From Macrostomum lignano (lineage: Eukaryota), in NCBI GenBank assembly GCA_002269645.1, contig NIVC01000928.1, positions 251,424 through 315,423 on the forward strand: a stretch of 64,000 nt of DNA, in the 5' to 3' direction. The notes under the pieces are model-generated. The model did no database searches. It saw only the letters and a list, made by a program, of their open reading frames with translations, and was not told the DNA's origin. Shown here in pieces: positions 14,501 to 58,100 of this stretch; the first letter of the stretch is position 1, and each line of letters begins with the position of its first letter. Position numbers and translations under genes: made by a program.

Positions 14501-14775
14501 CCAGCAGACCCAGCAGACCCCAGCAGACCCCAAACAGACCCCAGCAGACCCCAGCCAGCAGACCCCAGCAGACCCAGCAGACCTCAGCAGACCCAACAGA
14601 CCCCAAACAGACCCTAGCAGACCCCAGCAGATCCCAGCCAGCAGACCCCCAGCTCACCATCCTGATCGTAGTGACTCCACACCTCTGCAAACTGAGTGGC
14701 GGTGAAGTTCTTCAGCTTCTTGGTGCCCTGGTCCCGGAACTGACTGAGGAAGTTCTTCTGCTTGCCGTGGCTCAT
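2454..14775 (-). CDS. Cbp53E: Calbindin-32/calretinin-family EF-hand protein (Drosophila Cbp53E-like), coding exons 1-6; 3' end lies outside the window
   Basis: Six phase-consistent exons join to MSHGKQKNFLSQFRDQGTKKLKNFTATQFAEVWSHYDQDGNGFIEGAELDEFLHEF...[92 protein letters not shown]. This shows EF-hand loops and motifs ([25 protein letters not shown]) that I recognise from Cbp53E/calretinin. Confidence 0.93.
2580..3990. repeat. 42-bp minisatellite (GAGTGGAATGGATTGCTAATCTAGCCAATGTTAAAGATTACA), ~33 copies
   Basis: Directly visible; fills most of calbindin intron 5. Confidence 0.97.
4099..4155 (-). CDS. Cbp53E: Calbindin-like exon 5 ([19 protein letters not shown])
   Basis: AG/GT bounded, 57 bp, canonical EF-hand loop. 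Confidence 0.93.
4530..4975. repeat. 50-bp G-rich minisatellite
   Basis: aggggccgtg recurs at 4621, 4671 and 4721. Confidence 0.95.
5560..6003. repeat. GA-rich 10-bp repeat (AGAGAGGGGA)n
   Basis: Directly visible polypurine tract. Confidence 0.95.
6706..7187. repeat. 20/21-bp minisatellite (CAAGCATAACACCTCGAACACC)
   Basis: Tandem array abutting the exon 4 donor at 7191. Confidence 0.95.
7192..7278 (-). CDS. Cbp53E: Calbindin-like exon 4 ([29 protein letters not shown])
   Basis: AG/GT bounded, 87 bp, family linker motif. Confidence 0.93.
7370..7459 (-). CDS. Cbp53E: Calbindin-like exon 3 ([30 protein letters not shown])
   Basis: AG/GT bounded, 90 bp, EF-hand loop [12 protein letters not shown]. 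Confidence 0.93.
7631..8002. repeat. 78-bp tandem repeat with internal palindrome AACCCCGGGGTT
   Basis: gccatagac recurs at 7741, 7819, 7897 and 7975. Confidence 0.93.
8125..8210 (-). CDS. Cbp53E: Calbindin-like exon 2 (GNGFIEGAELDEFLHEFISSVVSEDAGNE)
   Basis: AG/GT bounded, 86 bp; completes the phase-1 Gly of EF-hand 1. Confidence 0.93.
9075..9635. repeat. (ATTAG)n / (GATCA)n pentamer microsatellite
   Basis: Directly visible. Confidence 0.95.
10081..10340. repeat. CT-rich low-complexity tract
   Basis: Polypyrimidine tract flanking SINE copy 1. Confidence 0.9.
10345..10715 (-). mobile_element. tRNA-derived SINE, copy 1 (~370 bp)
   Basis: Near-identical reverse complement of 39460-39821. 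Has a tRNA head (A-box variant TAGCCCAGCGG, B-box GGCTCGATTCC), an A-rich tail and an imperfect flanking duplication AGAGACG(A/G)GGA. Confidence 0.88.
11540..12511. repeat. CAGACCC(C)AG/AA 9-10-bp satellite, left block
   Basis: Tandem array interrupted by the element at 12512. Confidence 0.95.
12512..14067. mobile_element. Non-autonomous foldback-type DNA transposon (1556 bp); TIRs built of 14-bp GCTAGC-containing repeats; 8-bp TSD GACCCAGC
   Basis: Both ends begin GGG and then match for ~95 bp as inverted repeats, including a diagnostic GCTTGCC unit. GACCCAGC is at 12504-12511 and 14068-14075. No transposase ORF inside. Confidence 0.85.
14068..14650. repeat. CAGACCC(C)AG satellite, right block
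   Basis: Continues the 11540-12511 array; abuts the calbindin exon 1 donor. Confidence 0.95.
14658..14775 (-). CDS. Cbp53E: Calbindin-like exon 1 (MSHGKQKNF...WSHYDQD-G)
   Basis: ATG lies 1 nt after a ttttacag acceptor; ends at a gtgag donor in phase 1. Confidence 0.9.
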
Positions 14776-15270
14776 GCTGTAAAATTTGTCTGGGGTTGCT
14801 CTAAGAGAAAGAATTCGCTACAAGTGGAGCGGCAAAGGTTGCGGACACTCTCGAACTGCTGTTCAAACAAATCCTAGTGATTGGGATATTCGGGATCCGT
14901 GTTGCAGAGCTGGGACTGAAAGCAGAGAGCCAAGCAGCCGCCAGCTCCCTGGCATATCACCCCCTGCTCACGCCCTCCCCCATCCTCCGCGCCTCAGCCA
15001 CACTCTGCAGTGCATTGGGGAGCGCCGCCCTGATCCAATCAGGTGTGGCAGAAAGTTGCTGCTAGCGGATCAGAGCAGGGTGCGCAGTTCATTATTTGGT
15101 CAGGAATGCACAGCTGACCCCAACAGAGCTCAAAATGCGTTTGAGTCTGCCTTCATCTGGGGTTGCTGGGAATTTGTATTGACTCTGGTGATTGCAGTGA
15201 ATATTGGATAATTGAATATTCCGACTAACGGAATGTACTCTCGTAGATGTATATCGTGTAGGCTGGCTTT

Positions 15271-16583: not shown

Positions 16584-17751
16584 CTAAGTGATTTTGTAGA
16601 CATTGTTGTGCATCGGGCCGCCGCACGTGATCTCTGGCTGACCGTTGCACGGCAGTGAGCAATCGGAGTTCGGCAGCTTCTCACCGTGATTGCCGTGGCT
16701 CTGGCCGCACCAGCAGGCGTTGCCGCCCTGCAGGCCAAGAAATTTGGTGTCCCAGGCTACGCAGGTTTTCAAACAGGCTGCCAGAGTCATCTCGGTGCTG
16801 CGCTTTCCCATGATCGGCAGGTCGCGGGCGTGGGGCCGGTCCGGATAGCAACCGACCAGCTCGGTGTTGTGGGTCTTGACCTTTTTGAAGAACTTCTTGA
16901 TTCCTGTAAGAGGGAGTTTATACACCTTTTAACGGTCTTTTGAGGGTGTTTGACTGGGGTTGGCGGAGTGGGGTGGGGTGCCGGAGTTTATGAGGGTGTT
17001 TGACTGGGGTTGGCGGAGTGGGGTGGGGTGCCGGAGTTTATGAGGGTGTTTGACTGGGGTTGGCGGAGTGGGGTGGGGTGCCGGAGTTTATGAGGGTGTT
17101 TGACTGGGGTTGGCGGAGTGGGGTGGGGTGCCGGAGTTTATGAGGGTGTTTGACTGGGGTTGGCGGAGTGGGGTGGGGGTGCCGGAGTTTATGAGGATGT
17201 CTGACAGGGATTGGCGGATGGGGTGGGGGTGCCGGAGTTTATGAGGGTGTCTGACTGGGATTGGCAGAGTGGGGTGGGGTGTATGAGCTAGGGTGTTTTA
17301 CTGGGATTGGTGGAGTGGGATGGTGTATGAGCTAGGGTGTTTTACTGGGATTGGCGGAGTGGGGTGGGGTGCATGAGCTAGGGTGTTTTACTTTGGATTG
17401 GCGGAGTGGGGTGGGGTGTATGAGCTAGGGTGTTTTACTTGGATTGGCGGAGTGGGGTGGGGTGTATGAGCTAGGGTGTTTTACTACTGAGATTGGCGGA
17501 GTGGGTTGGGTGCCGGATTTTTTAGGGTGTTTGTTTGATGTTTGGCGGAAGGGAGCCACAGTTCTTGAGTCATTGATCCTTTTTCAAACTCACGAGCTAA
17601 ATGTACATGTATAGCTACTTAATAATCACAGCGCAGCTTCGTAAAACTTACTTTTAGGGCAGCAATCGACGTTAGTGATTAGCTGGCAGAACACTGCACA
17701 GAGCAAGCAAATCTTGGCGAATGTTTTCAATGAACCTAATTGCGATCGCAT
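16584..17751 (-). CDS. Secreted single WSC-domain protein, 139 aa, two exons (17652-17751 and 16584-16903)
   Basis: Exon 1 MRSQLGSLKTFAKICLLCAVFCQLITNVDCCPK is signal-peptide-like and ends at a phase-1 gtaag donor. Exon 2 completes the Arg codon and encodes GCYPD..RDLP..MT..CLKTC..LGLQGGNACWCG..CSLPCNG..TCGG..NVY, the canonical 8-Cys WSC pattern. Confidence 0.9.
16941..17520. repeat. 50-bp G-tract minisatellite in the WSC intron
   Basis: tgagggtgtt at 16941, 16991 and 17041; degenerates rightwards. Confidence 0.93.
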
Positions 17752-18930: not shown

Positions 18931-19138
18931 TCAATACGGCAGGCCCTGCGATTTAACGCTGAACATGTTGGGCCACTCGGAGCAGTCGGTCTCGCAGCCG
19001 GGCTTCAATAAATAGCCAATGCCGCACAGCAGGAGGAAGAATGCCTCAATAGGGAGGCTGAGCAGCATGCCGCGGTACAGGGTGTTCAGTAGGCTGCCAC
19101 GACGGCGACCGACTCCGCTAGAGGAAGCGACCCGCAAT
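18931..19138 (-). CDS. SYNE1: Nesprin terminal exon: transmembrane helix plus divergent KASH peptide (...LPIEAFFLLLCGIGYLLKPGCETDCSEWPNMFSVKSQGLPY*)
   Basis: ccgcag acceptor, phase 2 matching the preceding exon; basic patch, LP-x-x-hydrophobic TM, Cys-containing luminal tail and stop. Confidence 0.85.
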
Positions 19139-37100: not shown

Positions 37101-40100
37101 ACAAGTGTTGAACATACCATAGACTTAGGTCATCTGAGGACACAAGTGTTTAAAATACCATAGACTTAGGTCATCTGAGGACACAAGTGTTAAAAATACC
37201 ATAGACTTAGGTCATCTGAGGACACAAGTGTTAAAAATACCATAGACTTAGGTCATCTGAGGACACAAGTGTTAAAAATACCATAGACTGGGGTCATCTG
37301 AGGAAACGAGTGTTAAAAATACCATAGACTGGGGTCATCTGAGGACGAGTGTTAAAAATACCATAGACTTAGGTCATCTGAGGACACAAGTGTTAAAAAT
37401 ACCATAGACTGGGGTCATCTGAGGAAACGAGTGTTAATACCATAGACTGGGGTCATCTGAGGACGAGTGTTAAAAATACCATAGACTTAGGTCATCTAGC
37501 TGAGGACACAAGTGTTAAAAATACCATAGACTGGGGTCATCTAAGGACGAGTGTTAAAAATACCATAGACTGGGGTCATCTGAGGACGAGTGTTAAAAAT
37601 ACCATAGACTGGGGTCATCTGAGGAAACGAGTGTTAATACCATAGACTGGGGTCATCTGAGGACGAGTGTTAAAAATACCATAGACTTAGGTCATCTAGC
37701 TGAGGACACAAGTGTTAAAAATACCATAGACTGGGGTCATCTGAGGACGAGTGTTAAAAATACCATAGACTGGGGTCATCTGAGGACGAGTGTTAAAAAT
37801 ACCATAGACTGGGGTCATCTGAGGAAACGAGTGTTAAAAATACCAGACTGGAGTCATCTGAGGACGAGTGTTAAAAATACCATAGACTGGGGTCATCTGA
37901 GGAAACGAGTGTTAAAAATACCAGACTGGAGTCATCTGAGGACGAGTGTTAAAAATACCATAGACTTAGGTCATCTAGCTGAGGACACAAGTGTTAAAAA
38001 TACCATAGACTGGGGTCATCTGAGGAAAAGTGTTAATACCATAGACTGGGGTCATCTGAGGACGAGTGTTAAAAATACCATAGACTTAGGTCATCTAGCT
38101 GAGGACACAAGTGTTAAAAATACCATAGACTGGGGTCATCTGAGGACGAGTGTTAAAAATACCATAGACTGGGGTCATCTGAGGACGAGTGTTAAAAATA
38201 CCATAGACTGGGGTCATCTGAGGACGAGTGTTAAAAATACCATAGACTGGGGTCATCTGAGGACGAGTGTTAAAAATACCATAGACTGGGGTCATCTGAG
38301 GAAACGAGTGTTAAAAATACCAGACTGGAGTCATCTGAGGACGAGTGTTAAAAATACCATAGAAGGGGGTCATCTGAGGATACGACACGAGTGCAGGTAA
38401 GAGCCTAGACTGAGGTCATCTGAGGACACGCGTGGACGTATACTGGAAGACGTTTAAGAATGAGAACGAGGCCATACCAAAGTTCATTTGAGGACAAAGG
38501 GAGAACATACGCAGGCAGAATGGAGGTCATTTAAAAGCTTAATCGTGTCTTGAATACTCATTTCGTGAACAGCATGTACAGAAGTTTGCAAAGTGAATTG
38601 TGAATAAATGTAGAGTATCGTATCGTAGCTCAAGCGAATTTTAAGCTCTCGGTTAGATGATACAAATATAACCTAGTTAATTTACCTGAAATCTGTATAA
38701 GAATTGAAATGATGACTGCAAGTTGTTGCAAAAATGAAACGCTTGATTAAATGCTCAATATGGTGGACATATTTCAAAGTTAAACAGTTAAATAAAAGAC
38801 AATTACTCACATCTAAAGCGGGTCCACTCTCGGTTGAGTCAGTCTGGGAACGGAACAGACGCGATTCAACACCGTCCAGAGCTGATGAGACGGCAAGCAG
38901 AGCAGCCTGATAGCGGCGCTGCTGCTCTTGACGACCCTGTGATTGAATCTGTTGACTCTCGGTGGCTGACTGACGGCTCAGTCTAGTCATAGCTGCTGAC
39001 AATTGCGATAGGGCGTTATTGAGCTCAAGGCTGGCTTTAGTTGGCGACTCTGATGGATCTACAGCTTGTAGAGACGCTGGCCGAGTCTGAAAAAAAACAA
39101 ATAATAAATAATTGACAATGCTTTCATTACCGGACGAAATGCCTTTAAAAACGTCAAAATTCTGATGACAAGCAGAACGAATCCGATTGCGCAAGACATT
39201 CAACTTTCAGGTTTCAGCGATGCATAAACAATAATCATATTCATTAGTAAGTTGTAAAGGGACATACATGCGATATATAAAGACATTAAAAAACATACTA
39301 ATATGCACTTTCAGCTTGATTTCCGCGCAATTCGTTGATGCTAAACCTAATTGTACATTGCTAAATTTAATCAAGTTTTTTACAATCAAAGCTCTACATT
39401 TGTACATTTGATTTAATTTTAACACTTCCTCCGACTAGATAAGGCAAGCCTCGATTATAAGGGGGGCCGTAGCTCAGCGGTAGCGCAGCTGCTCTGGTGT
39501 GCCAGCGACCCAGGCTCGATTCCAAGTGCAGTCACATTAATTTGGGGCTGAATTGGAATCTCGGCTTGGCTCTGCTCGTGCAATTAACGGCCTTGAGAGC
39601 CAACCCCCCAAGGCGCAGTGAAGTGTACATGCCTAACGATAATATAAAGTTAGGGCCGCTGTACACTCCTGTGTGAGTGTGTGCCTGCGTACGTATCCGC
39701 ACGCTTGTATGCCTGCTCAGGGGAGTCGGCGGAATGGGCAGTAATGCCTCTCGCCGGTTGTGTGCCTATGTCGCTTAAAGTGCGCCAGGGTGCACACAAC
39801 CCCCCTGCCTCTAATAAAAAAAAGCCTCGATTATATAGCGCCGGCCGGGGTGTGGGAGAAGATTGAAAAACAGGCAATAAAATTCGCGACGGGGTGCCTG
39901 ATCTTGTTTTTGTCTACTAGGGTTAGGCTAAGGTTGATCGATAGTTCAGCCGCGTCGTCTCTCTATCCCCCATTCCCCCTCCAATGTATGTACACCGAAG
40001 GCACTAGCCACAAATAGTGGAATGTACATTAAATATCAAACCACATCACACTGAATGTCACAGCAGCACAGCATAATCACCGATCACTCAGCTCACTCAT

Positions 40101-43100
40101 GCAGTGCCTTACAATCGGGAAAAATATAAAGAGCCTTCGTTTCTGCTCGTTTTCGAGCAGAAAAGATCATGCAAGAAAAACATTGGGTTCGATATCACAT
40201 CAGCAGCAAGCTCGATTCAACTTGGCTAATCTAAGCACACTATAGCTATTCTGCACTTATCAAGACCTAAAGGCATTGCGTTGTACTTTTCCAAACAAGC
40301 TAATCGTTTAGTCAGTAGACAGATCTCGGCGGCAACAGTCGGTAAACGGTGAGCAGACAGTCGGCCGATAAGAACATACAAGTGAGCAGAATGAATGGTA
40401 GAAGGACCAAAAGAAGCAGCAGCTGAAAATTGATAGTTAAAAACAACAATAGTTGTTCTTCAGACTCTATACGGTTACGTTCGTCATCTCGATTTAGGAA
40501 AATGTTTACAGCCGAAAATTCGATACTCAAATGCAACACGGTCGTTCATGCCAAACACGAAACAACACTTACGACAAGCAATAGGACTGCCAATTTTCTA
40601 AGAATATTAGATTTATTGGCATTAGTACTTTCGTCCTAAATGGGAAATTAACAAAATGGTGGACACGAAAATGTTTTTTTGATGTCGTGTGATTTTCAGG
40701 TAGACAAAAGAACCTCTGCATAGCTTTTGCTTACCCCAGAATCAACAGCCTGAACAGTTTCATCGCGCCGCCTTCTAATATGCCGAGAAATGTTGCTAAG
40801 CTGCTCGTCCAGTTGAGCTTGCAATTCGTCAGAATCGTCGTACACTGGCTCGTCAGAGAGTTCCAGACGTTCGAAATCGTTGCCGAGACTCTGTATCAGA
40901 CTGTGATGATCTTGGATGCCGCTTTGAAGACGCTGCAAATTTAGATCGATTTCAATGTCAAATATTGATATTGATTCGATATCGCTTGCTTCTATCGTAG
41001 AAGCTTCCTGTATAGCATTGTTATTGTTGGCGTCGTGTTCCATAAATACTGGGAGCAGGTTTAATACGGTGAACACACAGGGAGATTGATCCCTTGGCTT
41101 TGAATAACGGGTCAACGGGAGGCCTGCGGACGACCCGACTTTTAACCGCGTGTTTGCAGCTAAGAAGCGCGGCAGGGGGTCTTCTAACCACCCCCAAAAC
41201 TTGCGCCAAGTTGGATTTCCAACGTACAATGAAGTGGGGGAATGGGGGAGCTAGCTGGGTAGAAGTTTTTGGAGCTAATGTACATTGGGCAATAAAATAG
41301 GTTGCGTACATTCAAATCATCCGACTTGACCAATCCCTTTAAAAATGGTTGGGCTGGGTGGGTCTGGCGCAGTTTGTGATTTTTTATTTAAACATTATTT
41401 AACAGCCTAAACAGTTTTTTACACAGCTATAAAAGTCTACAAGTGTACAGTGAATGTACACTATTAAAACGGCTTGAGTTTAAACCAGCCAAGTACATGA
41501 GCGATGATAAATAATCTTGTACAGTTTTCTATTGTAGTTTTGCACTTTATTGGTGACGCAAAAGAACTTACTAATAGATTAAGCTTGAATTTTAATTTCT
41601 CAAATTTCAAACCTTTCAGAGAACTTTCAGGCAAGCAGTAGACGATTTTGAATTACAACAACAACAAAATAAATTGTCAGCCAGCCAGGCGTGAGGCGTG
41701 AATGACAAGAATAGAGCATCAAAAACATACATAACAGCACTCACCATAGCCAAGCCCTCCTCAGCGGCTCGTCTTTGTCGGCCAATCTCGGCGGCCTCCG
41801 CGTGCTGCTGTTGTCGCCGAACTCGGTACTCGGTGCTGTCAACCGATTCGGCATCCGCTGCAGCATCTGCTCCAGCTGGCGCGGCAGGTGGCGCTCGTTC
41901 TGCAGCTTTGGCCGCTTCCCTTAGCGCCACCTGACGCTCAATACAGTCATTCTTCAACGCCTCCATCGCTTCTTGCAACGCGTGCAACCTGTTCTCAATT
42001 GGCCGGCGCTCGTCCGGCGACTCAAACTCGCACAGCTGATTATAGTGCACCTGGGCATCGCTGAGCTCCTGCAGTCGGCTATTGAGCTCCGAGTTGATCG
42101 ACCGACAGGCTTCAATGGCTGCGTCTGGATCAGCGGCACTGCTCACAGACTGCGCTAGTCGAGTCTCAGCCTGGCTAGTCCAGGCTTCAAGTCGGCCAGT
42201 GTCATCCAACAGGCGCGTCCGAGCATTCTGATGACGCTCCCGATCGCGCGCCGTCTGCAGAATCTTTTTCTTCTTCTGTTCGGCCAGATCTTTCAAGGAT
42301 TTCTCTTTTTTCTGCAGCGCAGTCAAGCTCTTCTGCATGGCCTCTTCGTCGTCTTTGCTGGACGACTCGCACAGCTCGAGACCGAGTCGCACCAGCGAAT
42401 CAATCTCCTGACTGATCACCTCGACTTCGATCATCAGATTCTCGTGCTCAGTTGTGCACTCATCTAACGAAGCGGCGTTGCGCGGATCGAGACTGTCCAG
42501 ACTCTGCTTAGTAGAGTCCATCCTCATGGCCACCGTGCGCAGACGCTCGTTGAACTCTTCTTGACGCGTTAGCGTGCGCTTCAGTTCCGCTTCTTTGGCG
42601 CGTAACTGGGTGGCAGAGAATTAAACTGATGTCTGGAGTTAACTGATTACAACTTTATCAGCGAGAGGCGGAGTGGGGTGGGCTTTTTTGTCAATGTACA
42701 TTGGCTGCAGCGACTGGAGCGGGGAAAGAGGGTCCCTGACTGGATGTACAGAGAGGGTCCCCGACTGGATGTACAGAGAGGGTCTCCGGCTGGATGTACA
42801 GAGGGTCCCCGACTGGATGTACAGAGAGGGCCCCCGGCTGAATGTACAGAGGGTCCCCGACTGGATGTACAGAGAGGGTCCCCGGCTGAATGTACAGAGA
42901 GGGTCCCCGGCTGAATGTACAGAGAGGGTCCCCGGCTGAATGTACATATCACGGCTTAAGCGGGGGGAGAGAGGGTCCCCGACTGAATGTAGAGAGAGGG
43001 TCCCCGACTGGATGTACAGAGAGGGTCCCCGGCTGAATGTACATATCATGGCTTAAGCGGGGCAGAGAGGATCCCCGACTGAATGTACAGAGAGGGTCCC

Positions 43101-46100
43101 CGGCTGAATGTACATATCACGGCTTAAGCGGGGCAGAGAGGATCCCCGACTGAATGTACAGAGAGGGTCCCCGGCTGAATGTACATATCACGGCTTAAGC
43201 GGGAGAGAGGATCCTCGACTGAATGTACAGAGAGGGTCCCTGGCTGAATATACCAGTACAGAGAGGGTCCCCGGCTGAATGTACACTTGTTAAAAGTTCA
43301 AGAAATGCAGGTAAAAATGCTGGAAGATGTTGAAAGTCAAAAAAGGTTCAGCAGGATAGTGGACTGGATTGAAAAATTTATACACTCGTAGGAAAAGTAG
43401 GTTCACACTCCTCCAAGGCTCGTAAATGAGCTTAATAATAATACCGATAAAATATGTACGAAATAATTACCATAATACTTGTCACAGGTTTTTATGGAAT
43501 CCAAATGAAGATGGCGATGGCGAGATTTCAAATTAGAAAATCAAAAATTAGGAGTAATGAAGCGAAGAGGCGGAATACTTCAAGTATGAATGAACGAATT
43601 AATTCTTAAATGCAAGGCGCTCTATAAAGAAAGCAGAACCCTCATTGATATTAATAAGCTTTATAGCAGTCATACATCGTGAACATTGCAGCCTGCACAA
43701 CAAGTGTACCAGAATCTGTGCTAAATTTACAAGTCAGGCTAATGGTGTGTTTATTCCAACTGCCGGAGAGAGACAGTTGAAATCGGTTGTGGCGCGTGCA
43801 GACAGCCACAAATTGTGGGTAGGATGTAGAGAGCGGTTGCCCCGAGGTTTTGCGCAGCTAGACGTGTAGAGTCAGTCGAATTCAGGCATCAACAGTAAAC
43901 TAAGGACAGGAAGTGAGATATAGTTATGAATGGTCTGCGAGCCGGTATTGAACTCACCTTGCCGTGCATGCTGGTCACCCGCTCATCGATCTGCTCCTCG
44001 GTTAGAGCTCTGGCCTCCTCAGCTGGCACAGCATCGATTGTGGTGCTGCTGGCGGCCATTTCGGACGACCTCTCAGCTGTAGCTGACGAGTCTGACCTGA
44101 CGGGCCGGTCCTGCGTATTCCAGAACACAACAACCTCGCCGTCGGCAAGAGACTGCGTAGCGCCTTGCAGGCTGTAGGTCTCGCCCTCGCCAAGGTACAT
44201 CGCGTCGCCAGCTCGAAGCAGTCGCGACCGGAAGTTCACAGTGACAACGGTCTCCCGGTCGAGCGGAACCGCCATGGCCCGACGACACCGATGGAAGTCC
44301 AGCGGCACCAGCAGCCTCGGCTGTTGGCCAGTCGGTCTGGCAGACTGCTCGGCGCTGTTCACGAAGCTGACCCGATCGGCCGGCTGCAGGCGCACCGGCT
44401 CGCCTGGCTGCACAGTCACTGGCAATTCGTTCACTAGCACAGTCTCGTACGGGTCCACCCACACAACTTGCTGCCTCTGCTGCTCGGCCAGCGAGTACAC
44501 GCAGATGACCTGATCGGCCGGGCTGTAGCACAGGCTGGACCCAACTTTGGCCTCCTGCATCGGCCCGATCAGGTGCAGCTCATTGGCGACTACCGGAGTC
44601 GCTTCTCCGTCGCGCACGATCGGAGTTTCGGCGTCCACACGACACCAGGATCGGCGAAGACGGCTCCAGCTGCTGGCGGCCCCGGGCCTCGTCGCTGCCA
44701 CTGCGGTCGCGGCGCAGGAAGCGAATCTCGTTTGGCCTGGCCGAGGGCTGCCGTTCGCCGTCCAGCTGGATGGAGTCTCCGGGTTTCAGCATCGAGAGTG
44801 TCGCCGAATCATCGTCAGGCGGTTGATCGTTGATGAGCACTGCTTGGCGATCGGGATTGACGGTCAGGATCGAGACAGTCTCGTGGCTGATGCTGAGGGC
44901 ATCGTCGGGCGTGCAGAATCTCTGGGCCCGGGTGGCGCGGGTGCAGCAGAAGACTGCGACGGCTGAGGCGGCGGCGGCATCGCTTCGAGACGATGGAACG
45001 CAGCGTCGAGTTCGTTGGCGCCGCGGCTGGAGACAGCGAGATGCGGTCTGACCGGCTCCTCGTCTGGTGCCGCTGGCGACTGCTACGGTGGTTTTTTTAA
45101 AGATGAGAGACGGATTTTAAAACAAATTCCACAGCTTCCGGCTTTGAATATAAGCACATTGGGTTTGCTCAAGCACAGAGGTTCGCCTTCTGCTTCTGGT
45201 CTTTAACCTACTCGTACTGCTCGCTGGGTTGGTCTGAAACTATTCGCTTCTACCTCTGTCTGTCTCTCTCTCTCTATGCGCACAGTCGGGGGCATTTATT
45301 AATTCTTGGCTTATTTATTGTTCATTCTCAAATTCGTCTGCATTATTGTCCGCAGCTCCTAACGAAAAACCCATGCAGTTTTAATTTATTCTACTACTCG
45401 ACCGCATCTTCATTCAGTCGGTTTGAAGTAAAAAAAGCTGCTATTTGAGTCAAGGCGTGTCTCACGTTCTATTTGCAGTGATGAGGTGGTGGCGGTCTGC
45501 TGGACAGAGACGCACACGAGCCTTTAGAGAAATAGAACACCCCAGGGTGTGCAGTTTGCGCACTATGTCGGCACCGAATACAGAGTACAATAAACAACAG
45601 ATCTTACATCAATTAGAAATTCCATACAGACTACCGAACTAAGTAGTAAGTAAAGAAGATAAAGCTCGTAGTTACCTGAGCGGCGCTGCGAGCCTCTAGC
45701 TGGGCCAGTTCGGCAGCCAGTCTCTCGTACTCGGGGTCCGACTCGGACAAGCCGCCAGTTGTTCGCAGCGTCTCCAATTCGTAGCGCAGAGTTTTCACGT
45801 TGCGCGCGAGTTCGAGCGACTCACGCTCGGCGGCTGCTGCGGCCACGCCTGCCCGGCTGGAGGCGCCGCTGCCGCGACCGCGGCCGGCCTTCAACGCCGC
45901 GAGATCGTCGACGTCGGCCGCTGGGTACTGGGACTTTTTAGGAGACTCGCTAGCACTTCCTGCTGATACTGACTCGGACTCTGATGCCTCCTTAGCTGGC
46001 GACCCTTCCACACTTCTTACTGGAGAGGCCTCGAAACTCTGAGATTCTTTCGTAGGCGACGCGTCCGCGCTAGTAAGTGCCCTCGGTGGCGAAGCTTCGG

Positions 46101-49100
46101 CACTGACAAAGCTTGTGGCGGGTGAAGCTTCGAAACTTGGCGGCGCATCTCCTGTTTGTTGCGCTTCGATTGTTAAAGCGTCTCTGATCGGCGCTGCTTC
46201 AGCACTCGGTACCTCTCTTGTCGGCGATGCTTCAGCACTCGGTACCTCTCTTGTCGGCGATGCTTCAGCACTCGGTACCTCTCTTGTCGGTGACACTTCA
46301 GCACTCAGTACCTCTCTTGTCGGTGACACTTCAGCACTCAGTACCTCTCTTGTCGGCGATGCTTCAGCACTCGGTACCTCTCTTGTCGGCGATGCTTCAG
46401 CACTCAGTACCTCTCTTGTCGGTGACACTTCAGCACTCAGTACCTCTCTTGTCGGCGATGCTTCAGCACTCGGTACCTCTCTTGTCGGCGATGCTTCAGC
46501 ACTCGGTACCTCTCTTGTCGGCGATGCTTCAGCACTCAGTACCTCTCTTGTCGGCGATGCTTCAGCACTCGGTAACTCTCTTATCGGCGATGCTTCAGCA
46601 CTCGGTACCTCTCTTGTCGGCGATGCTTTAGCACTCAGTACCTCTCTTGTCGGCGATGCTTCAGCACTCGGTACCTCTCTTGTCGGCGATGCTTCAGCAC
46701 TCGGTACCTCTCTTGTCGGCGATGCTTCAGCACTCAGTACCTCTCTTGTCGGCGATGCTTCAGCACTCGGTAACTCTCTTATCGGCGATGCTTCAGCACT
46801 CGGTACCTCTCTTGTCGGCGATGCTTCAGCACTCAGTACCTCTCTTGTCGGCGATGCTTCAGCACTCGGTACCTCTCTTGTCGGCGATGCTTCAGCACTC
46901 GGTACCTCTCTTGTCGGCGATGCTTCAGCACTCAGTACCTCTCTTGTCGGTGACACTTCAGCACTCGGTACCTCTCTTGTCGGCGATGCTTCAGCACTCA
47001 GTACCTCTCTTGTCGGTGACACTTCAGCACTCGGTACCTCTCTTGTCGGCGATGCTTCAGCACTCAGTACCTCTCTTGTCGGCGATGCTTCAGCACTCGG
47101 TACCTCTCTTGTCGGCGATGCTTCAGCACTCAGTACCTCTCTTGTCGGCGATGCTTCAGCACTCAGTACCTCTCTTGTCGGCGATGCTTCAGCACTCGGT
47201 ACCTCTTTTTTCGGTGATGCTTCAGCACTCGGTACCTCTCTTGTCGGTGATATTTCAGCACTCAGTACCTCTCTTGTCAAAGAAACATCAGCACTCGGTA
47301 CCTCTCTTGTCAAAGAAACATCAGCACTCGGTACCTCTCTTGTCGGCGATGCTTCAGCACTCAGTACCTCTCTTGTCGGTGACACTTCAGCACTCAGTAC
47401 CTCTCTTGTCGGTGACACTTCAGCACTCAGTACCTCTCTTGTCGGTGACACTTCAGCACTCAGTACCTCTCTTGTCGGCGATGCTTCAGCACTCGGTACC
47501 TCTCTTGTCGGTGACACTTCAGCACTCAGTACCTCTCTTGTCGGTGATGCTTCAGCACTCGGTACCTCTCTTGTCGGCGATGCTTCAGCACTCGGTACCT
47601 CTCTTGTCAAAGAAACATCAGCACTCGGTACCTCTCTTGTCGGCGATGCTTCAGCACTCAGTACCTCTCTTGTCGGCGATGCTTCAGCACTCAGTACCTC
47701 TCTTGTCGGTGACACTTCAGCACTCGGTACCTCTCTTGTCGGCGATGCTTCAGCACTCGGTACCTCTCTTGTCGGTGACACTTCAGCACTCAGTACCTCT
47801 CTTGTCGGTGATGCTTCAGCACTCGGTACCTCTCTTGTCGGCGATGCTTCAGCACTCGGTACCTCTCTTGTCAAAGAAACATCAGCACTCGGTACCTCTC
47901 TTGTCGGCGATGCTTCAGCACTCAGTACCTCTCTTGTCGGCGATGCTTCAGCACTCGGTACCTCTCTTGTCGGCGATGCTTCAGCACTCAGTACCTCTCT
48001 TGTCGGCGATGCTTCAGCACTCAGTACCTCTCTTGTCGGTGACACTTCAGCACTCAGTACCTCTCTTGTCGGCGATGCTTCAGCACTCAGTACCTCTCTT
48101 GTCGGCGATGCTTCAGCACTCAGTACCTCTCTTGTCGGCGATGCTTCAGCACTCGGTACCTCTCTTGTCGGTGACACTTCAGCACTCAGTACCTCTCTTG
48201 TCGGCGATGCTTCAGCACTCGGTACCTCTCTTGTCGGTGACACTTCAGCACTCAGTACCTCTCTTGTCGGTGATGCTTCAGCACTCGGTACCTCTCTTGT
48301 CGGCGATGCTTCAGCACTCGGTACCTCTCTTGTCAAAGAAACATCAGCACTCGGTACCTCTCTTGTCGGCGATGCTTCAGCACTCAGTACCTCTCTTGTC
48401 GGCGATGCTTCAGCACTCGGTACCTCTCTTGTCGGCGATGCTTCAGCACTCGGTACCTCTCTTGTCGGCGATGCTTCAGCACTCGGTACCTCTCTTGTCG
48501 GCGATGCTTCAGCACTCAGTACCTCTCTTGTCGGCGATGCTTCAGCACTCGGTAACTCTCTTATCGGCGATGCTTCAGCACTCGGTACCTCTCTTGTCGG
48601 CGATGCTTCAGCACTCAGTACCTCTCTTGTCGGCGATGCTTCAGCACTCGGTACCTCTCTTGTCGGCGATGCTTCAGCACTCAGTACCTCTCTTGTCGGC
48701 GATGCTTCAGCACTCGGTACCTCTCTTGGCGGTGACACTTCAGCAGTCGGTACCTCTCTTGTCGGTGACACTTCAGCACTCGGTACCTCTCTTCTCGGTG
48801 ATGCTTCAACACTCGGTACCTCTCTTGTCGGCGATGCTTCAGCACTCAGTACCTCTCTTGTCGGCGATGCTTCAGCACTCGGTACCTCTCTTGGCGGTGA
48901 CACTTCAGCAGTCGGTACCTCTCTTGGCGGTGACACTTCAGCAGTCGGTACCTCTCTTGTCGGTGACACTTCAGCACTCGGTACCTCTCTTCTCGGTGAT
49001 GCTTCAACACTCGGTACATCTCTTGTCAAAGAAACATCAGCACTCGGTACTTCTCTTGCTGGTGATGCTTCAGCACTCGGTACCTCTCTTGTCGGTGATG

Positions 49101-52100
49101 CCTCAGCACTCGGAACACTTCTGGCTGGAGAAGCTTCAGCACTCGGTACATCTTTTGAAGGCGAGGCTTCAGCACTCGGTACATCTCTTGAAGGCGATGC
49201 TTCAGCTGTAAAAGTAGATGCAGCTGATAAAAACTCTCCACTGGAAGCCGATTTGCTTCGTGCTGTTGAGGCTTCAAAACTAGTAGCATCCTTGATTTGC
49301 GAATATCTAGCGGTTGTCACTTCATCACTGGGGCCGCTCGTCGCTGGTGACGCTTCAGCATATGGGCCTTCCACTGTAGGCTCACTCGCAGCTGCTGAAA
49401 ACTCAACACTTGCAACGCTTTTAGCTGGTGAAGATTCGACACTGCGTATGTCTCCAGCAGATGGCGCTTCGGTGCGTGGATTATCACCAGTTGTCGAGGC
49501 TTCAGCTGTTGGAACTGACCTCTTCAGCGACAGTTCAATGCTTGAAGACGCTTCACCAATATCGCCTGTGGCGCTGGGCAGACTTCTGACTGGAGACCCT
49601 TCAACACTTTTGGCTGGAGAGGTGTCAACACTATGGACGGGTGACGTCTCAAAACTGGGTACAGGTCGACTACTGAACTCTTCGGTCACAACCTCATCAG
49701 CAGGTCTCACCTCAGCACTGCTTGAACTGTCGGCTGGCGCTTGCTGCTCACCGATACTGCCTTGTGCAAGCAAGCGCTTTGCTGCCGCTCTTCTTGCCAG
49801 AAGTTCGTCAGCGCTAGGAAAAGTGGACATGGAATGCAAAGAGGCATCCTTTGACGGTGACGATTCAGCACTTTGAACTGGAGATGCTTCGGCACTCTGA
49901 ACTGGAAGAGCTTCAGCTTTCTTTGACGGTGACGATTCAGCACTTTGAACTGGAGATGCTTCGGCGCTCTGAACTGGAGATGCTTCGGCACTATGAGCTG
50001 GAAGAGCTTCAGCTTTCTTTGACGGTGACGATTCAGCACTCTGAGCTGGAGATGCCTCAGGACGTTGTAATGAAAAAGCATCTGTATCCTGCATTTTCCC
50101 GAAAGTCTCCGCGCTTTTTAGCTGAGAATCTTTGGCCAAGAAATTAGAAGTTGAACTTTCAATGCTTTCAGTAAAAACAGTTGTAGTTGTCTGAATTCTT
50201 GTTTTGGTTTGCTGCATAGTGTTCTTTTCAGCACTCGGAGCACTTCTGGCTGGAGACGCTTCTGCTTCGGCACTTGGGACACTTCTGGCTGGAGACGCTT
50301 CAGTGCTCTGTCCCTCTTCAAATACTACTGCTTCAGCACTCGGAACACTTCTGGCTGGAGACGCTTCAGTGCTCTGTCCCTCTTCAATGACTACTGCTTC
50401 AGCACTCGGAACACTTCTGGCTGGAGACGCTTCAGTGCTCTGTCCCTCTTCAATGACTACTGCTTCAGCACTCGGAACACTTCTGGCTGGAGACGCTTCA
50501 GTGCTCTGTCCCTCTTCAATGACTACTGCTTCAGCACTCGGAACACTTCTGGCTGGAGACGCTTCAGCACTCGGAACACTTCTGGCTGGAGACGCTTCAG
50601 CACTCGGAACACTTCTGGCTGGAGACGCTTCAGTGCTCTGTCCCTCTTCAATGACCACTGCTTCAGCACTCGGAACACTTCTGGCTGGAGGCGCTTCAAC
50701 ACTCGGAACACTTCTGGCTGGAGATGCTTCAGCACTCGGAACACTTCTGGCTGGAGACGCTTCAGTGCTCTGTCCCTCTTCAATGACCACTGCTTCAGCA
50801 CTCGGGACACTTCTGGCTGGAGACGCTTCAGCACTCGGAACACTTCTGGCTGGAGATGCTTCAGCACTCGGAACACTTCTGGCTGGAGACGCTTCAGCAC
50901 TCGGAACACTTCTGGCTGGAGACGCTTCAGTGCTCTGTCCCTCTTCAATGACCACTGCTTCAGCACTCGGAACACTTCTGGCTGGAGGCGCTTCAACACT
51001 CGGAACACTTCTGGCTGGAGATGCTTCAGTGCTCTGTCCCTCTTCAATGACCACTGCTTCAGCACTCGGAACACTTCTGGCTGGAGGCGCTTCAACACTC
51101 GGAACACTTCTGGCTCGAGACGCTTCAGCACTCGGAACACTTCTGGCTGGAGACGCTTCAGCACTCGGAACACTTCTGGCTGGAGATGCTTCAGTGCTCT
51201 GTCCCTCTTCAATGACCACTGCTTCAGCACTCGGAACACTTCTGGCTGGAGGCGCTTCAGCACTCGGAACACTTCTGGCTGGAGACGCCTCAGCACTCGG
51301 AACACTTCTGGCTGGAGACGCGCTGGGAGCACTTGGGCCGGCCTCCGAGCTCAGGGCCTGGGGCCTTTGCTTGGCAGTAGCAGCAGTCTCAGAAACTTCA
51401 TAGGGCAACTCTTCAAGACTGGGCAGTCGTTTCTTAGAGCGAGGCGAGCCGTCGCTTTCTTGGGAAGCAGCAGAGTGCGGTCTAGCTGGGTGAACTCGGA
51501 CAGTCTGCGCCTCCTCAACCAGCACTGTCGGTTTCACCGAGCGAGTCGGCGATCCAGACGACGGTTGCGGCGGTCGAAGGTCGGCGGCATCAAACCGAGA
51601 GGACGCAACCACCGGAGACGTTCTCTGACGCACTGAAATTGCTGATGGCGTCGTCCTCGGACTCGACGGCGAGAACTGGCGCGGCGTCTTACGAGGACTC
51701 TTGGGACTCTCGCGACGCCGTTCCAGAGTGAGCCGGACCTCGATGTTGGGCGGCTCGTCCAAACTGTCATCGCCAGCACCGAGGCCGAGCTGCGGCGTTT
51801 CAATCGTCAGCTGGGGCTTCCGCCTGATGGCGGCGATCTCATCCTGCTGCGGCTCCTCTGGGGCGTTCGCGATGGCCGCTGCTGACTCCACCTCGGTCTC
51901 CAGGTCGGCCAGCTGGGACTCCAATCGGCCAAGTCGATCTCGCAGTTCGGCGGGCACCGAGCCGCCGCTGCCCCGGCCGGCCGGATAGCGAACGCTGACC
52001 TCCTCCACGATCTCCGTGACGCGACGGCGTTGAACCAGAACCTCCTGGCGGGCCAGCGCGCATCGAGCGGCTAGCGCCTCGGTTGGCGCGGCGTCAACGC

Positions 52101-55100
52101 CCGAAGCGGCCGCGCGCGCCTGGCCGAGGCCGAAGCGCTCATCCGGAGCCCGGCGCCGAGGCTGTCCAACCGGGCTGTCAGGTCCTGACGGTACTCCAGC
52201 TCCGAGTCGACGGCAGCCTCCGATTGATTGAGCCGATCCTGGGCTCTTGATGATGATGGAAGAATGAAATGGAATATGTATTGCGGCAATAACAAAATTT
52301 TCTATGACGTGACTAACCGTGGCTAACTTGGCTTAACTTTCAGCGCCTGAAACAAATGTGAAACCCCAGTCTAGTAGCGATTATTAATGACGAATAAATT
52401 CTTACTCGGAAAATCGCTGCTCAACATCTGTAGCGCTGCGGTCAGCCTCCAGCATCGCGGCCGCGTCCGAACTCGACTGGACAAACTGCCGGCTCTGGTC
52501 GCGAAATTCGGACAGCCGGTGCTCGGCGGCTCGGAGCTGCTTCTTGGAATTCTAAGAATGCCGAAAGAGCGATAGGGGTGTTGAACTTGAGACCATATTA
52601 CTGCTTGTTAATTAGTGCAAATGCACGTAAATACTTTGAAGTTTGAAACTGCATAGCAACTGAGATCCTGGGAGGCTGACCCAGCAACTGAGGATCTTCT
52701 GGGAGGTTGGCCCAGCAACTGAGGATCTGGGAGGCTGGCCCAGCAACTGAGGATCTGGGAGGCTGGCCCTGCAACTGAGGATCTGGGAGGCTGGCCCAGC
52801 AACTGAGGATCTGGGAGGCTGGCCCAGCAACTGAGGATCTGGAAGGCTGGCCCAGCAACTGAGGATCTTCTGGGAGGTTGGCCCAGGAACTGAGGATCTT
52901 GGAGGGTGGCGGTGGCCCAGTAACTGAGGAACTGGGAGGTTGTCATGTGGTCAAGTGATCATAACACTGAAAAATGCAAGCAAGTGCGCAGCGAAGTGCA
53001 TGAGTGCATTGAAAGTACATTACAGGTGTAAGTGCATTCTACACAACACCCCAATGAAACGGCAACTCTGCATAAGGGTGGCAAGGTAAGCAAAGGTGGA
53101 ACTTCCTGCCTAAAAGCAAAGGAACACTCTCTTTCCCTCACAGCATGGATCGTGCAAAGCTACCAGCAAAATAGCAAAGCATAAGTGCAATGAATCAAAA
53201 GTCGTTAGTTACTAAGGCTAAGATAAAAATTTGAAAATTTATACAAGACCAAAACTTACCTCGATACTTATTTCTTCGCTAATAGCATAGGTTGACTAGA
53301 AAAGGTTAGCAAAACAAAGCAAGTTAGGTGTTTGTTATATAGCTACAAAACTCATTTTAGCGTGTTTAAAACTACTTATTAGATGACGAGGCTAAACATG
53401 TTCTAGTTTTACTCGCCGTTTATCCAAACTGTTAATTGTAACGTTAAACTAATTAGAGTTAATTTAAACAAAAGTCAAACAAACGGACCTGAACTCTCCT
53501 GGCCCGCTCCTGAAGCTCCTGGCTGGACAGGCGCCCCAGGTCAGCCCCAGAGTCGCCGCCGGCCCCCGTAGCCGCCGAAGTCGCGGCTTCGATGGTTTCG
53601 TCCAGCGAATGTCGCCGATTGCGCAGGTCGCCGAGGCCGCCAGCCTCGCGGTGAAGCTGAGCGCGCTGGCGAACAACGGCCGACTGCAGATCGGCGAACC
53701 GGCTGAGCAGCTCCTCGGCCTGCTCGGAGACCCGCCGGCGGCTGGACAGGCCGCAGTGCCGCTGCAGCGAGTCGCCGGCCACCCGCAGATTATCCAGGCT
53801 GGCCTTCAGCGACTCGGTCTCGCGCAGCAGCGACTCAACGGAGTCGTCGTACGAGGCTGAGACCGAAGCGGAAGCGGAGGCTGTATCGCGCCATCTGCGC
53901 TCCGTCACCTCGAGGGTCTCCGTGACGCTGCGAACCACTCGCTGAAATTGTTGGGAGAAACAGAAGGAGATGAGAAGTGAATGGGGCTTCTCGGATGAAG
54001 CTTTGCGGCTGACGGAGATGGGAGGCTGGCCCAGCAGGCCAGCAACTGAGGATCTGGGAGGCTGGCCTAGCAACTGGGGATCTGAGAGGTTGGCCCAGCA
54101 ACTGGGGATCTGAGAGGCTGGCCCAGCAACTGAGGATCTGGGAGGCTGGTGGCTCAGCAACTGGGGATCTGGGAGGCTGGCCCAGCAACTGGGGATCTGG
54201 GAGGCTGGCCCAGCAACTGGGGATCTGGGAGGCTGGCCCAGCAACTGGGGATCTGGGAGGCTGGCCCAGCAACTGGGGATCTGGGAGGCTGGCCCAGCAA
54301 CTGAGGATCTGGGAGGCTGGCCCAGCAACTGGGGATCTGGGAGGCTGGCCCAGCAACTGGGGATCTAGGAGGCTGGCTCAGCAACTGGGGATCTGGGAGG
54401 CTGGCCCAGCAACTGGGGATCTGGGAGGCTGGCCCAGCAACTGGGGATCTGGGAGGCTGGCCCAGCAACTGGGGATCTGGGAGGTTGGCCCAGAAACTGG
54501 GGATCTGAGAGGTTCGCCCAGCAACTGGGGATCTGAGAAGTTGGCCCAGAAACTGGGGATCTGGGAGGTTCGCCGAGCAACTGGGGATCTGGGAGGCTGG
54601 CCCAGCAACTGAGGATCTGGGAGGCTGGTGGCTCAGCAACTGGGGATCTGGGAGGCTGGCTCAGCAACTTAGGATCTGGGAGGCTGGCTCAGCAACTTAG
54701 GATCTGGGAGGCTGGCCCAGCAACTGGGGATCTGGGAGGCTGGCTCAGCAACTGGGGATCTGGGAGGCTGGCCCAGCAACTGGGGATCTGGGAGGCTGGC
54801 CCAGCAACTGGGGATCTGGGAGGCTGGCCCAGCAATTGGGATCTGGGAGGCTGGCCCAGCAACTGGGGATCTGATAGGTTCGCCCAGCAACTGGGGATCT
54901 GAGAAGTTGGCCCAGAAACTGGGGATCTGGGAGGTTCGCCGAGCAACTGGGGATCTGGGAGGCTGGCCCAGCAACTGAGAATCTGGGAGGCTGGCTCAGC
55001 AACTGGGGATCTGGGAGGCTGGCTCAGCAACTTAGGATCTGGGAGGCTGGCTCAGCAACTTAGGATCTGGGAGGCTGGCTCAGCAACTGGGGATCTGGGA

Positions 55101-58100
55101 GGCTGGCCAAGCAACTGGGGATCTGGGAGGCTGGCTCAGCAACTGAGGATCTGGGAGGCTGGCCCAGCAACTGAAACTCTGGGAGGCTGGTGGCTCATCA
55201 ACTGGGGATCTGGGAGGCTGGCCCAGCAACTGAAACTCTGGGAGGCTGGCCCAGCAACTGAAACTCTGGGAGGCTGGTGGCTCATCAACTGGGGATCTGG
55301 GAGGCTGGCCCAGCAACTGAAACTCTGGGAGGCTGGTGGCTCATCAACTGGGGATCTGGGAGGCTGGCCTATCTGCAGAGTGAGCAGGGAGCAAACAAGG
55401 AGGCTACCGGAGAGTCTGTCTGCACTTTCACTGCATTCAAAGGCATTCAAATTGGAACGAAAAATGTGTGAAAGCTGAGTGGCACCGCCAACCCCCCCCC
55501 CCTTCCTTAAGAGCCGCTCCAGCAGAGCGACTGCGAGAGATATTGACAGAAAGACGCAAATGACAAAGGAAACTCCAGGCAGCCAGGTGTAACTATAAAA
55601 TATCCTTATCGACTTGAAGTTGTTAACCATGGCAACGGCACGCAATAGATCTTGTAATAAAGGAACTCACGGGGAGTTGCTACACTAAATTGCTTTACCT
55701 GGCAAACGATCCTTCTTCTTTTACACGGGCCTCGTTGCTGCTGCTGTTGCTCTTTCTGCTGCTGTTTGCGCTGCTGCTGATCATAGCTGGGTCCCAGCTG
55801 CGCCGCATGGCAACTAATCAGCTAACTAATTCGAACACCTGGCCTATCTAATTATCTACCTGGGAGAGTTATCTCCAGAATTGACAATGTAGCAATTTCT
55901 TCTGCCGGTGGCGCGGCTGCCGCAGCATCAGCAGCAGCAGCGGCAGGTGTTGCAGAATCTGCATTACCAAAGCCGCCGCATCAGCTCGGGACTCAATCGA
56001 GGCATTGGCAGACAGCCAGCAGGCTGAGAACAACAACAAGAAACACTTCTTTCCGAAAACTGTTGTTCTACTCTATCCTGCACTGGTTCTTCTGCTTTTG
56101 CTTCTCACGCAACTTGTGGCAGAGAAAAAATAATAAAACTCTTTTTCCTAAGTCTGCTTCTTTTAGTCTCTACATGTTAATAGTCTGCTGCTCTTGCAGA
56201 TTTTCTTCTTTGTATACTCCACAGCAGCAGGCGGGGAGGGGTTGCGCGCGCTGAGCCTGAGCGGTCTGGGAGGTTGGGGCGGCTGCTCCGATCTCTCCTC
56301 TCTGTGCCTACCCGCGCCTCTCGCCTCGCCCAGAGCAAACACAGAGCCCTCAGCCCCACAACCAGCTGCATTGCAGTGCAGTGCAGAGGCCCTCGCCAAT
56401 CTCTCTCTCCCTCTCCCTATCCCCTCCTGTCCGCTTCCCTCCCAGGGCTTGTCCTGCAGTTCCTCCCTGCCGCCCCCCCTCACCGTTACGGCGTACTTGG
56501 CAAGCTGGGAGATTTCTGTGGGCTGAAGGGGAACTGAGGATACAGGGCGAAGCCAGGCGAGTCGTGGCGCATGCGTGGGAGTGCGCGATGGGGATTCTGG
56601 ATCCCCTACAGACCCCAACTCTCTTCCCTCCCTCCCTCTTTCTCTCCCCCCTTTCTTAGATGACGCTGACTGGCCGTCAGTGAGTCACGCGGAGGTAAGG
56701 AAGTCGAAAAGCAGAATTAAATCTGGGCCCAGCAAAAAAACAGCTGGCAAAATCGAGATTTCTAGTCACAGATGTTGCGTAATAAAAAGCGCATGTGCTA
56801 TTTAACTGACTCGGACTGCCGCTGTCTTCTTCTGTCGATTAGCCACGACAGAAGGATTTAAAACTTTCTGCTTTAAAAAAGTTGGTATTTCTATCATCAT
56901 CATTCTTACTAAATTAGGCGTAAAAAAGATGTCCCACCCTAATCTGGATACTTTTAGTGGTAGATAAAGGGCAGGATTTTTTTTACAGTTGCACGACAAT
57001 CCCCACTGGCGCAAAACAGCTCTGGACTTACGCTGAATTTCTCCTGCTCCTCAGTGACCAGCCGCTGCTCCTCAATCAGCCTCCGCCCAGTCGACATCAG
57101 CTCGTTGGCTCTCAGTTTCGCATCCTCAATCTGTCGTTGCATTTCAGCCAGACCCTCCGGCCCCAGACCGTCCTTGATGTTCTCGGCCAGAGCGGCCATG
57201 GTGTCCAGTCGGCTTCTGGCGACAGTCGCAGCCTCCGGGCCGAATATTCTACTCAGCCGAGTTGCCAGGCTGTCCAGCTCCATCAGGTCGAATCCTTCGG
57301 TGTCCAGCCTCCTGGCTAGCGGCTTCGCCTCGCCTATCCAGGACTCCAGCTCTGCTTTGGCGGACTCCAGCTGGTGCCGGTGCTGCAGCTCATCGCCGAG
57401 CACCTCCAGCCGGTCGGCAGCCGCCGCGGCGAGGTCGGCGCGGGCTTCGCGAACTGCTGCGCTGGATGGCGACGCCGTTGAGACGTCCTCGGCCGACGCT
57501 TTCTGCTCCTGCGGTGCGGGAGGGGCGGCGGCGGCATCAGCTGGTGACTCAGCGGACTCCTGCTGCTGTGACAGCAGCTGCTGGATGATGTAGGGAACCA
57601 GCAGCATGGGATAACTGAGGGCCTCAGACTCAGACAGCAGATATGAGACAGGGCCCAGCCCGCAACCCCAGCACACAAAAGCAATGAAAGAGCTTTTATC
57701 ATAGCGATTCCTCTGAAGTCCCCCCGTGTAGACCTCCAGCTGTCTCCTCCCCTCTCCCTCATCTCCCTCTCCCTCGCCATCAAAAGCAGCCAAGCAATAA
57801 CTCTGGTATACAGCCTCAGGTGCACAGCGCAGGTGCTTCTAAGCGTACTTTTGTCCTCGCCCGCTGCCTTCTCTCCATCTCTCCCCGCTTCCTTTCCCTT
57901 AGATTATTCATCCCACCCCACTGTTTCTCCCATTCTTTTACCTCCCAGGCTCCACAGACCGGGAGCTCAGGGACTGCAGGTGCAGCGGCAACCAATCAGA
58001 GCCATGCAGTCTGGCTGCACCCTGGGTTGCCGGCAGGGGACTTTTGCTTCGGCAACAAAAGGAAATGAGTTACACTGAAGAGAACTGGAGAGGTTGGGTG

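Follow-up and report, generated by a model that had tools for sequence, protein, structure and literature searches.

We examined a 64,000-nt stretch of the genome of the flatworm Macrostomum lignano (assembly GCA_002269645.1, contig NIVC01000928.1, positions 251,424 to 315,423; the whole stretch is called the window below and is numbered from its first letter) that carries a nesprin-like gene. All exon and intron coordinates of this gene refer to the minus strand. Intron 12 of the gene may hold alternative last exons, so that a single locus would have alternative ends, and we assign this reading a probability of about 0.45. If a second reading is included, in which the same exon would end a separate upstream gene, we lean slightly toward the tail-anchor exon being real. 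The predicted proximal anchor is of the generic tail-anchor type and is not a KASH domain. An earlier note on this DNA had proposed that the locus encodes two alternative membrane anchors and had likened the proximal tail to a distal KASH tail; a second anchor is plausible in view of its splice acceptor, phase, hydrophobicity, and rarity, the join made by a gene model of the locus, and the precedent of Drosophila Msp300-PE, but it does not appear to be a second KASH.

Candidate terminal exons in intron 12

The features of the proximal region are as follows:
40932-40735, minus strand: exon 12, 66 codons (RLQSG...AVDSG), ending in phase 0, with donor GTAAGC at 40734
40635-40573, minus strand: candidate micro-exon of 63 nt, phase 0 at both ends, encoding DESTNANKSNILRKLAVLLLV, predicted from the sequence
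40440-40436, minus strand: TTAAC resembling a branch point, read directly, with the acceptor AG 12 nt further on
40422-40312, minus strand: candidate alternative last coding exon, 36 codons closed by TGA at 40314-40312

The acceptor of the terminal exon is ttttcAG, with its AG at 40424-40423, 312 nt beyond exon 12. The open reading frame (ORF) at 40422-40315 encodes LLLLLVLLPFILLTCMFLSADCLLTVYRLLPPRSVY, in which a strongly hydrophobic helix (Kyte-Doolittle mean over 19 residues, KD19, of 2.82 for the terminal exon alone and 3.46 with the micro-exon) is followed by the 16-residue tail DCLLTVYRLLPPRSVY. Counting the last residue as 0, the tail carries D and C at -15/-14, a di-proline at -5/-4, and Tyr as its last residue. 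The acceptor, phase 0, the 36 codons, the D-C pair, the di-proline, and the terminal Tyr had all been described in the earlier note and were read here as given there. Its observation of a hydrophobic stretch of transmembrane (TM) length with a short tail also held, and the stretch proved statistically unusual. The GC content of the terminal exon is 0.50 (0.61 at third codon positions, GC3) against 0.35-0.40 in its flanks, a coding-like step; a 50-nt GC profile was not discriminating. The candidate splice sites fit the consensus as well as do the sites of exons 11-13, which were mapped from a UniProt gene model of the locus (P0002, described below). The candidate-exon region is single copy within the window. 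Use of the terminal exon as an in-frame cassette was rejected, as a suitable in-phase donor is absent ahead of its stop.

The micro-exon lies between exon 12 and the terminal exon and was absent from the earlier note. It has the acceptor cccatttAG, preceded at 13 nt by a TTAAT, and a GTAAGT donor that fits the consensus perfectly; the two small introns flanking it would be 99 and 150 nt. Splicing from exon 12 through the micro-exon to the terminal exon and splicing from exon 12 straight to the terminal exon are both in frame. Joined, the three exons read ...AVDSG-DESTNANKSNILRK-LAVLLLVLLLLLVLLPFILLTCMFLSA-DCLLTVYRLLPPRSVY, where the micro-exon would supply a membrane-adjacent Arg-Lys, placed on the cytoplasmic side, and the N-terminal part of the helix, which would thereby be ∼27 residues long instead of 20, with the 16-residue tail unchanged. 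AlphaFold2 run on the single sequence gave one helix over residues 34-116, with a predicted local distance difference test score (pLDDT) >90 over the junction of the micro-exon and the terminal exon; a helix is expected for such a sequence, and this result serves as a consistency check only. If the micro-exon donor is left unused (40635-40573 plus 40572-40548, minus strand), the frame runs on to DESTNANKSNILRKLAVLLLVVSVVSCLA and a stop, which would give a short hydrophobic C-terminus; this frame is one of just two hydrophobic acceptor ORFs in the window.

Both strands of the window (128 kb) were scanned for ORFs of 25-99 codons opening after an AG whose 11 preceding bases include at least 8 pyrimidines. 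Only 2 of the 260 acceptor-like ORFs reach a KD19 of at least 2.3, and these are the micro-exon and the terminal exon, which are adjacent, on the strand of the gene, within intron 12, and join in frame. In first-order Markov simulations of the intron (n = 5000), an acceptor ORF of this type with a KD value of at least 2.8 appeared in 0.12% of the sequences (P = 0.0012) and one of at least 2.3 in 2.1%. Extended over the introns of the gene, whose number we put at ∼25-30, the look-elsewhere chance is estimated at ∼0.03-0.04, a figure that does not count the micro-exon; a coherent micro-exon lowers it further. A hydrophobic acceptor ORF of this kind is thus unlikely to have arisen by chance.

Gene architecture and the proposed isoforms

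The candidate anchor exon is placed at the boundary between the head of the protein (repeats, a region labeled FHA, and two spectrin repeats) and the spectrin rod. The exons on either side of this boundary are:
45634-52332, minus strand: giant ORF of the head, 2233 codons from stop to stop, with repeat arrays
41745-42605, minus strand: exon 11, its acceptor (cccAG|TTA) and donor (ATG|GTGAGT) both seen in the sequence; mapped from P0002
38811-39086, minus strand: exon 13, the first rod exon, acceptor ttttttttcAG, phase 0, first Met at 38990

Exon 11 matches Pfam Spectrin (PF00435) with E = 7.5e-8 in two stretches, and this is the only Spectrin match seen in the head. The rod exons from 39086 to ∼20300 match Spectrin, Spectrin_SYNE1, and faintly Spectrin_Anc-1_2; nesprin-like is a fair name for the rod. 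P0002 is UniRef100_A0A1I8IHH1, a 1338-aa M. lignano entry named 'FHA domain-containing protein'; this gene model comes from another, more diverged copy of the locus. Its exons follow the order of the window and are each 85-100% identical to it, with residues 1-180 lying at 46215-45676 (99% identity) and residues 793-859 in exon 12 (94%). Pfam FHA had no match in the window exons (E <= 1) or in P0002 (E <= 0.1), and FHA is the UniRef name only. In P0002, exon 13 follows immediately on exon 12 with the frame kept (...AVDSG|TRPASLQ...), which makes one transcription unit with two possible ends a reasonable proposal; the source of the junction is this UniProt gene model only.

Under the proposal of alternative last exons, the exon-12 donor (40735) would be linked to the terminal exon (40422-40312) either by way of the micro-exon (40635-40573) or straight at 40422, and a message using these proximal exons would end before the spectrin rod. 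Its short product would consist of the repeat head, the FHA-labeled region, two spectrin repeats, the very hydrophobic helix, and the 16-residue tail. Such a protein would be expected to be tail-anchored, inserted post-translationally into the endoplasmic reticulum (ER) and the outer nuclear membrane with its head in the cytoplasm. Splicing of the same donor to exon 13 (39086) would instead give the long rod with the distal anchor. The choice between isoforms would come down to the proximal acceptors and 3'-end formation competing with the distal acceptor.

The 2233-codon ORF of the head holds 92 tandem copies of a 33-nt unit at 46181-49206 (11 residues in the minus-strand coding frame, resembling REVPSAEASPT). 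These 11-residue units are unusually short for a nesprin head. Upstream of the 33-nt array there are arrays of 66, 72, 165, and 264 nt, and 49849-51321 belongs to the repeat region as well. The tandem repeats at 52600-55700 (minus strand), with ASLPDPQLLGQPPRSPVAGPASQIPSCW-like units, leave all three frames open and correspond to the 'SPxR modules' of the earlier note. In intron 12, a GC-rich insertion at 39450-39900 (minus strand) contains a stretch that resembles a short interspersed nuclear element (SINE) derived from tRNA (...GGCACACCAGAGCAGCTGCGCTACCGCTGAGCTACGG...); ARAGORN found no tRNA. The next gene downstream of the nesprin-like gene is represented by an ORF at 16587-16928 (minus strand) with a clear WSC domain (Pfam PF01822, E = 1.2e-17). 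Two further ORFs at ∼14617-14817 and 8092-8322 look EF-hand-like by eye, yet had no Pfam match at E <= 0.01.

The proximal and distal tails compared with KASH

The far end of the gene is formed by the following exon:
18931-19138, minus strand: distal terminal exon, moderately hydrophobic helix and 24-residue tail ending GLPY, the 'distal KASH' of the earlier note

The distal tail (19138-18934) ends in ...KPGCETDCSEWPNMFSVKSQGLPY and a stop; its last residue is Tyr and its D-C pair stands at -17/-16, in agreement with its earlier description as sequence. The Pfam KASH hidden Markov model (PF10541), a check that had been proposed, matched neither the distal tail nor either splice form of the proximal tail (micro-exon included or skipped) at E <= 1. 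A repeated Pfam search with the distal tail gave no KASH match at E <= 0.01, and in a PDB sequence search neither tail resembled KASH peptides. A canonical PPPX exon was looked for further downstream of the distal tail and none was found. The D-C pair and terminal Tyr had been taken as a resemblance between the two tails. In a shuffle test, the luminal parts were no more alike than chance (p = 0.30), and the value of 0.07 obtained with the helices reflects their shared hydrophobic composition; the shared residues are therefore not evidence of relatedness.

If its exon is used, the proximal candidate would have the layout of a KASH tail, in which one predicted TM helix and a short luminal peptide close the protein, and in this it would resemble canonical KASH domains (PF10541; nesprin-1/2, Klarsicht, ANC-1), which likewise sit at the C-terminus of a spectrin-repeat protein. 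It differs from them in its luminal peptide (∼16 residues, against ∼30) and in having no Pfam match. It ends LLPPRSVY, without a terminal PPPX, and its sole luminal Cys is at -14, with none near -23. In silico, one hydrophobic helix lies within ∼30 residues of the C-terminus, as in tail-anchored proteins. The idea that the proximal tail is a second KASH was rejected on the Pfam and PDB searches and the proximal-distal shuffle test. By sequence, generic tail anchor is the best name for the proximal end. The distal end, with its moderately hydrophobic helix, its GLPY terminus, and no Pfam or PDB match, is at most a very divergent KASH, and the KASH label given to it earlier was not borne out.

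Annotation, homologs, and competing explanations

Two features of intron 12 bear on whether the candidate exons are used:
40696-40734, minus strand: read-through of the exon-12 donor, VSKSYAEVLLST then stop; the C-terminus of P0001
40612-40617, minus strand: AATAAA, the only one in intron 12, inside the micro-exon and ∼80 nt past the read-through stop

Window 30696-51043 has a second copy on M. lignano contig NIVC01000393.1 (558793-579140), with ∼97% identity overall and indels; alignments within the 33-nt repeat array are ambiguous, with multiple offset matches. Divergence between the two is patchy: ∼4% in intron 11, 0% over 41229-40106 including introns, and five differences over 40106-38740. 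Three differences fall in the GC-rich insertion of intron 12. In this hidden polyploid, such a pattern would be expected from a different haplotype, from a duplicated block, or from another assembly. The annotation of the NIVC01 contigs was derived from RNA-seq transcription units cut at experimental trans-splice and poly(A) sites, and transcripts overlapping repeats were taken out of the GenBank set (PMC5730564). P0001 is a 115-aa coding sequence (CDS) on NIVC01000393.1, whose sequence is that of window 41043-40696 without a difference. From a starting Met within intron 11 it passes the exon-12 donor and stops 12 codons into intron 12 (...AVDSGVSKSYAEVLLST). When exon 12, the micro-exon, and the tail were searched against 1.84 billion representative proteins, two true matches came back, P0001 and P0002, both in exon 12 only. 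The N-terminus of the rod found no match in a homolog search, another protein homolog search returned P0001 alone, and a third gave nothing, low-complexity words having probably swamped its 8000 candidates; a metagenome scan for relatives found none.

Several of these observations weigh against use of the candidate exons. On NIVC01000393.1 (M. lignano Mlig_3_7, GCA_002269645.1) no CDS is annotated between window positions 40696 and 38990, and the P0001 read-through is the only ORF annotated here in an RNA-seq-based set. The sole AATAAA of intron 12 falls within the supposed micro-exon, whereas none stands near the stop of the TM exon: neither AATAAA nor ATTAAA occurs within ∼890 nt past that stop, the next ATTAAA being ∼890 nt away. 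The micro-exon has an intron-like composition (GC 0.33), and the proximal tail has no homolog among the 1.84 billion proteins. The second copy is 100% identical over 41229-40106, introns included, and thus gives no sign of selection either way. If the acceptor requirement is dropped, hydrophobic ORF ends of a looser kind turn up fairly often, 25 times over the window's six frames, and CT-rich sequence beside an acceptor easily gives Leu/Phe runs when translated. Most of this could be accounted for if the hydrophobic ORF is unused and a chance product of a pyrimidine-rich intron. The real proximal end, if any, would then be the exon-12 read-through (...AVDSGVSKSYAEVLLST, stop), and cleavage after the AATAAA at 40617 would yield a soluble, anchor-less short form, unless the read-through is mere unspliced precursor. 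We regard this explanation as doubtful, although it deserves serious consideration. Since looser ORF ends are common, the signal lies in the combination of features, and the combination of an acceptor with a strongly hydrophobic ORF is rare; a chance origin also has to explain two adjacent pieces with consensus splice sites that join in frame into a longer helix after Arg-Lys. P0001 resembles an unspliced fragment more than a mature mRNA because its start lies in intron 11, and the exclusion of repeat-overlapping transcripts would drop those of the repeat-rich head, so absence from the annotation is weak evidence. It may mark a third 3' end, one that lacks an anchor, or else a piece of unspliced precursor that found its way into the annotation. 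The distal tail also has no nearby AATAAA, which makes the poly(A) signal a soft criterion in M. lignano. The exon model of the earlier note needs to be amended to take in the micro-exon, the AATAAA that it contains, and the read-through ORF annotated for exon 12.

Alternatively, the tail-anchor exon may end an upstream gene, with the rod made as a separate mRNA from the same transcription unit. The rod mRNA would start at the exon-13 acceptor by spliced-leader trans-splicing and be translated from Met 38990, and there would be no alternative anchors on one protein. The GenBank annotation does begin a rod protein of at least 2395 aa at Met 38990 in exon 13, unjoined to exon 12, and the joining of exons 12 and 13 comes only from the P0002 model. 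In M. lignano, trans-splicing affects 39% of genes, and ∼7% of transcription units each give rise to several trans-spliced mRNAs (PMC5730564). Because polycistronic, trans-spliced units are common in this species, the alternative is less remote than the earlier note held when it called two tandem genes less likely, but we still rank it below a single locus and think it improbable. The exon-12 donor and the exon-13 acceptor are both in phase 0, the frame is open over 32 codons from that acceptor to Met 38990, spectrin repeats are present on both sides of the junction, and P0002 is collinear across it. The Msp300 locus, moreover, makes both forms from one gene. Least probable, and to our mind very improbable, is an internal 'poison' exon, in which the acceptor is used and a downstream donor (e.g. 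GTAAGG near 40120) is spliced to exon 13, so that the stop would trigger nonsense-mediated decay and regulate the nesprin level with no anchored protein made. The lack of a nearby poly(A) signal and the plausible GTAAGG donor ∼190 nt past the stop would suit such an exon. It leaves the TM-grade helix with its short tail and the in-frame micro-exon unexplained, and no data support it.

Comparison with known anchors

The nearest precedent for alternative last exons at a nesprin locus is Drosophila Msp300-PE, a nesprin isoform that is built of giant tandem repeats together with two spectrin repeats, lacks both CH domains and KASH, and whose C-terminus is a predicted TM helix followed by 35 residues (PMC11230431). 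The isoform is backed by cDNA, RNA-seq, and genetics, and is needed for the perinuclear microtubule-organizing center in fat-body cells, where the authors propose a novel LINC-like complex; the Msp300 locus thus makes long KASH isoforms and a KASH-less isoform with an alternative TM end (PMC11230431). The order of parts is alike here, namely the 2233-codon repeat ORF, the two-stretch Spectrin match, the TM helix, and a short tail, and a giant repeat exon with very few spectrin repeats lies upstream of the anchor in both. As to a long rod with a distal anchor at the same locus, P0002 joins exon 12 to exon 13 and the rod matches Spectrin and Spectrin_SYNE1, but the annotation splits them, and the distal tail is not a recognizable KASH. 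The repeat unit is ∼101-108 residues in the fly against 11 here and the tail is 35 residues against 16. The insect isoform has transcript and genetic support, whereas the flatworm candidate is known from genomic sequence alone. The architecture is one already described in kind for Msp300-PE, the closest known system to the flatworm candidate.

In SLMAP, a tail-anchored coiled-coil protein, alternative 3' exons choose between the tail anchors TA1 and TA2, and SLMAP3 acts at the nuclear envelope and the microtubule-organizing center (PMC2712456, PMC11461071). The choice of anchor by alternative 3' exons would be shared with the flatworm locus, whose head carries the UniProt name 'FHA domain-containing', but SLMAP has another domain order, no detectable homology, and no spectrin rod or distal anchor. 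Identity of the locus with SLMAP was rejected, as Pfam FHA is absent. An insect Msp300 gene was likewise rejected, given that UniRef assigns P0002 to M. lignano and that P0001 lies on an M. lignano contig. C. elegans ANC-1, as cited in PMC11230431, positions nuclei independently of KASH and the LINC complex (PMC8139857). For Klarsicht beta, the same source cites an alternative 3' exon that gives a lipid-droplet (LD) domain in place of KASH (PMC11230431). The resemblance is that an alternative 3' end in a KASH-protein gene sends the product to another target. The Klarsicht beta LD domain is not known to be a C-terminal TM tail anchor.

Implications

If the proximal exons are used, the flatworm nesprin locus would give rise to two proteins that differ in their membrane anchor and differ greatly in how far they extend into the cytoplasm. 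Msp300-PE would then no longer be the sole example of a nesprin in which a plain tail anchor takes the place of KASH, the flatworm protein being the second, and the M. lignano annotation, which omits the candidate exons and most of the head, would need correction. It is a long shot, but repeat-rich, spectrin-poor, non-KASH tail-anchored nesprin isoforms could form an old and widespread bilaterian class represented in flies and flatworms. They would provide a second tether of cytoskeletal organizers to the outer nuclear or ER membrane, SUN-independent or with a different partner, chosen by alternative last exons just before the rod. With the proximal exons in use, the Msp300-PE architecture would reach beyond insects, which would suggest that it is either ancient or repeatedly invented, and a flatworm amenable to transgenesis would be at hand for asking whether such anchors need SUN proteins.

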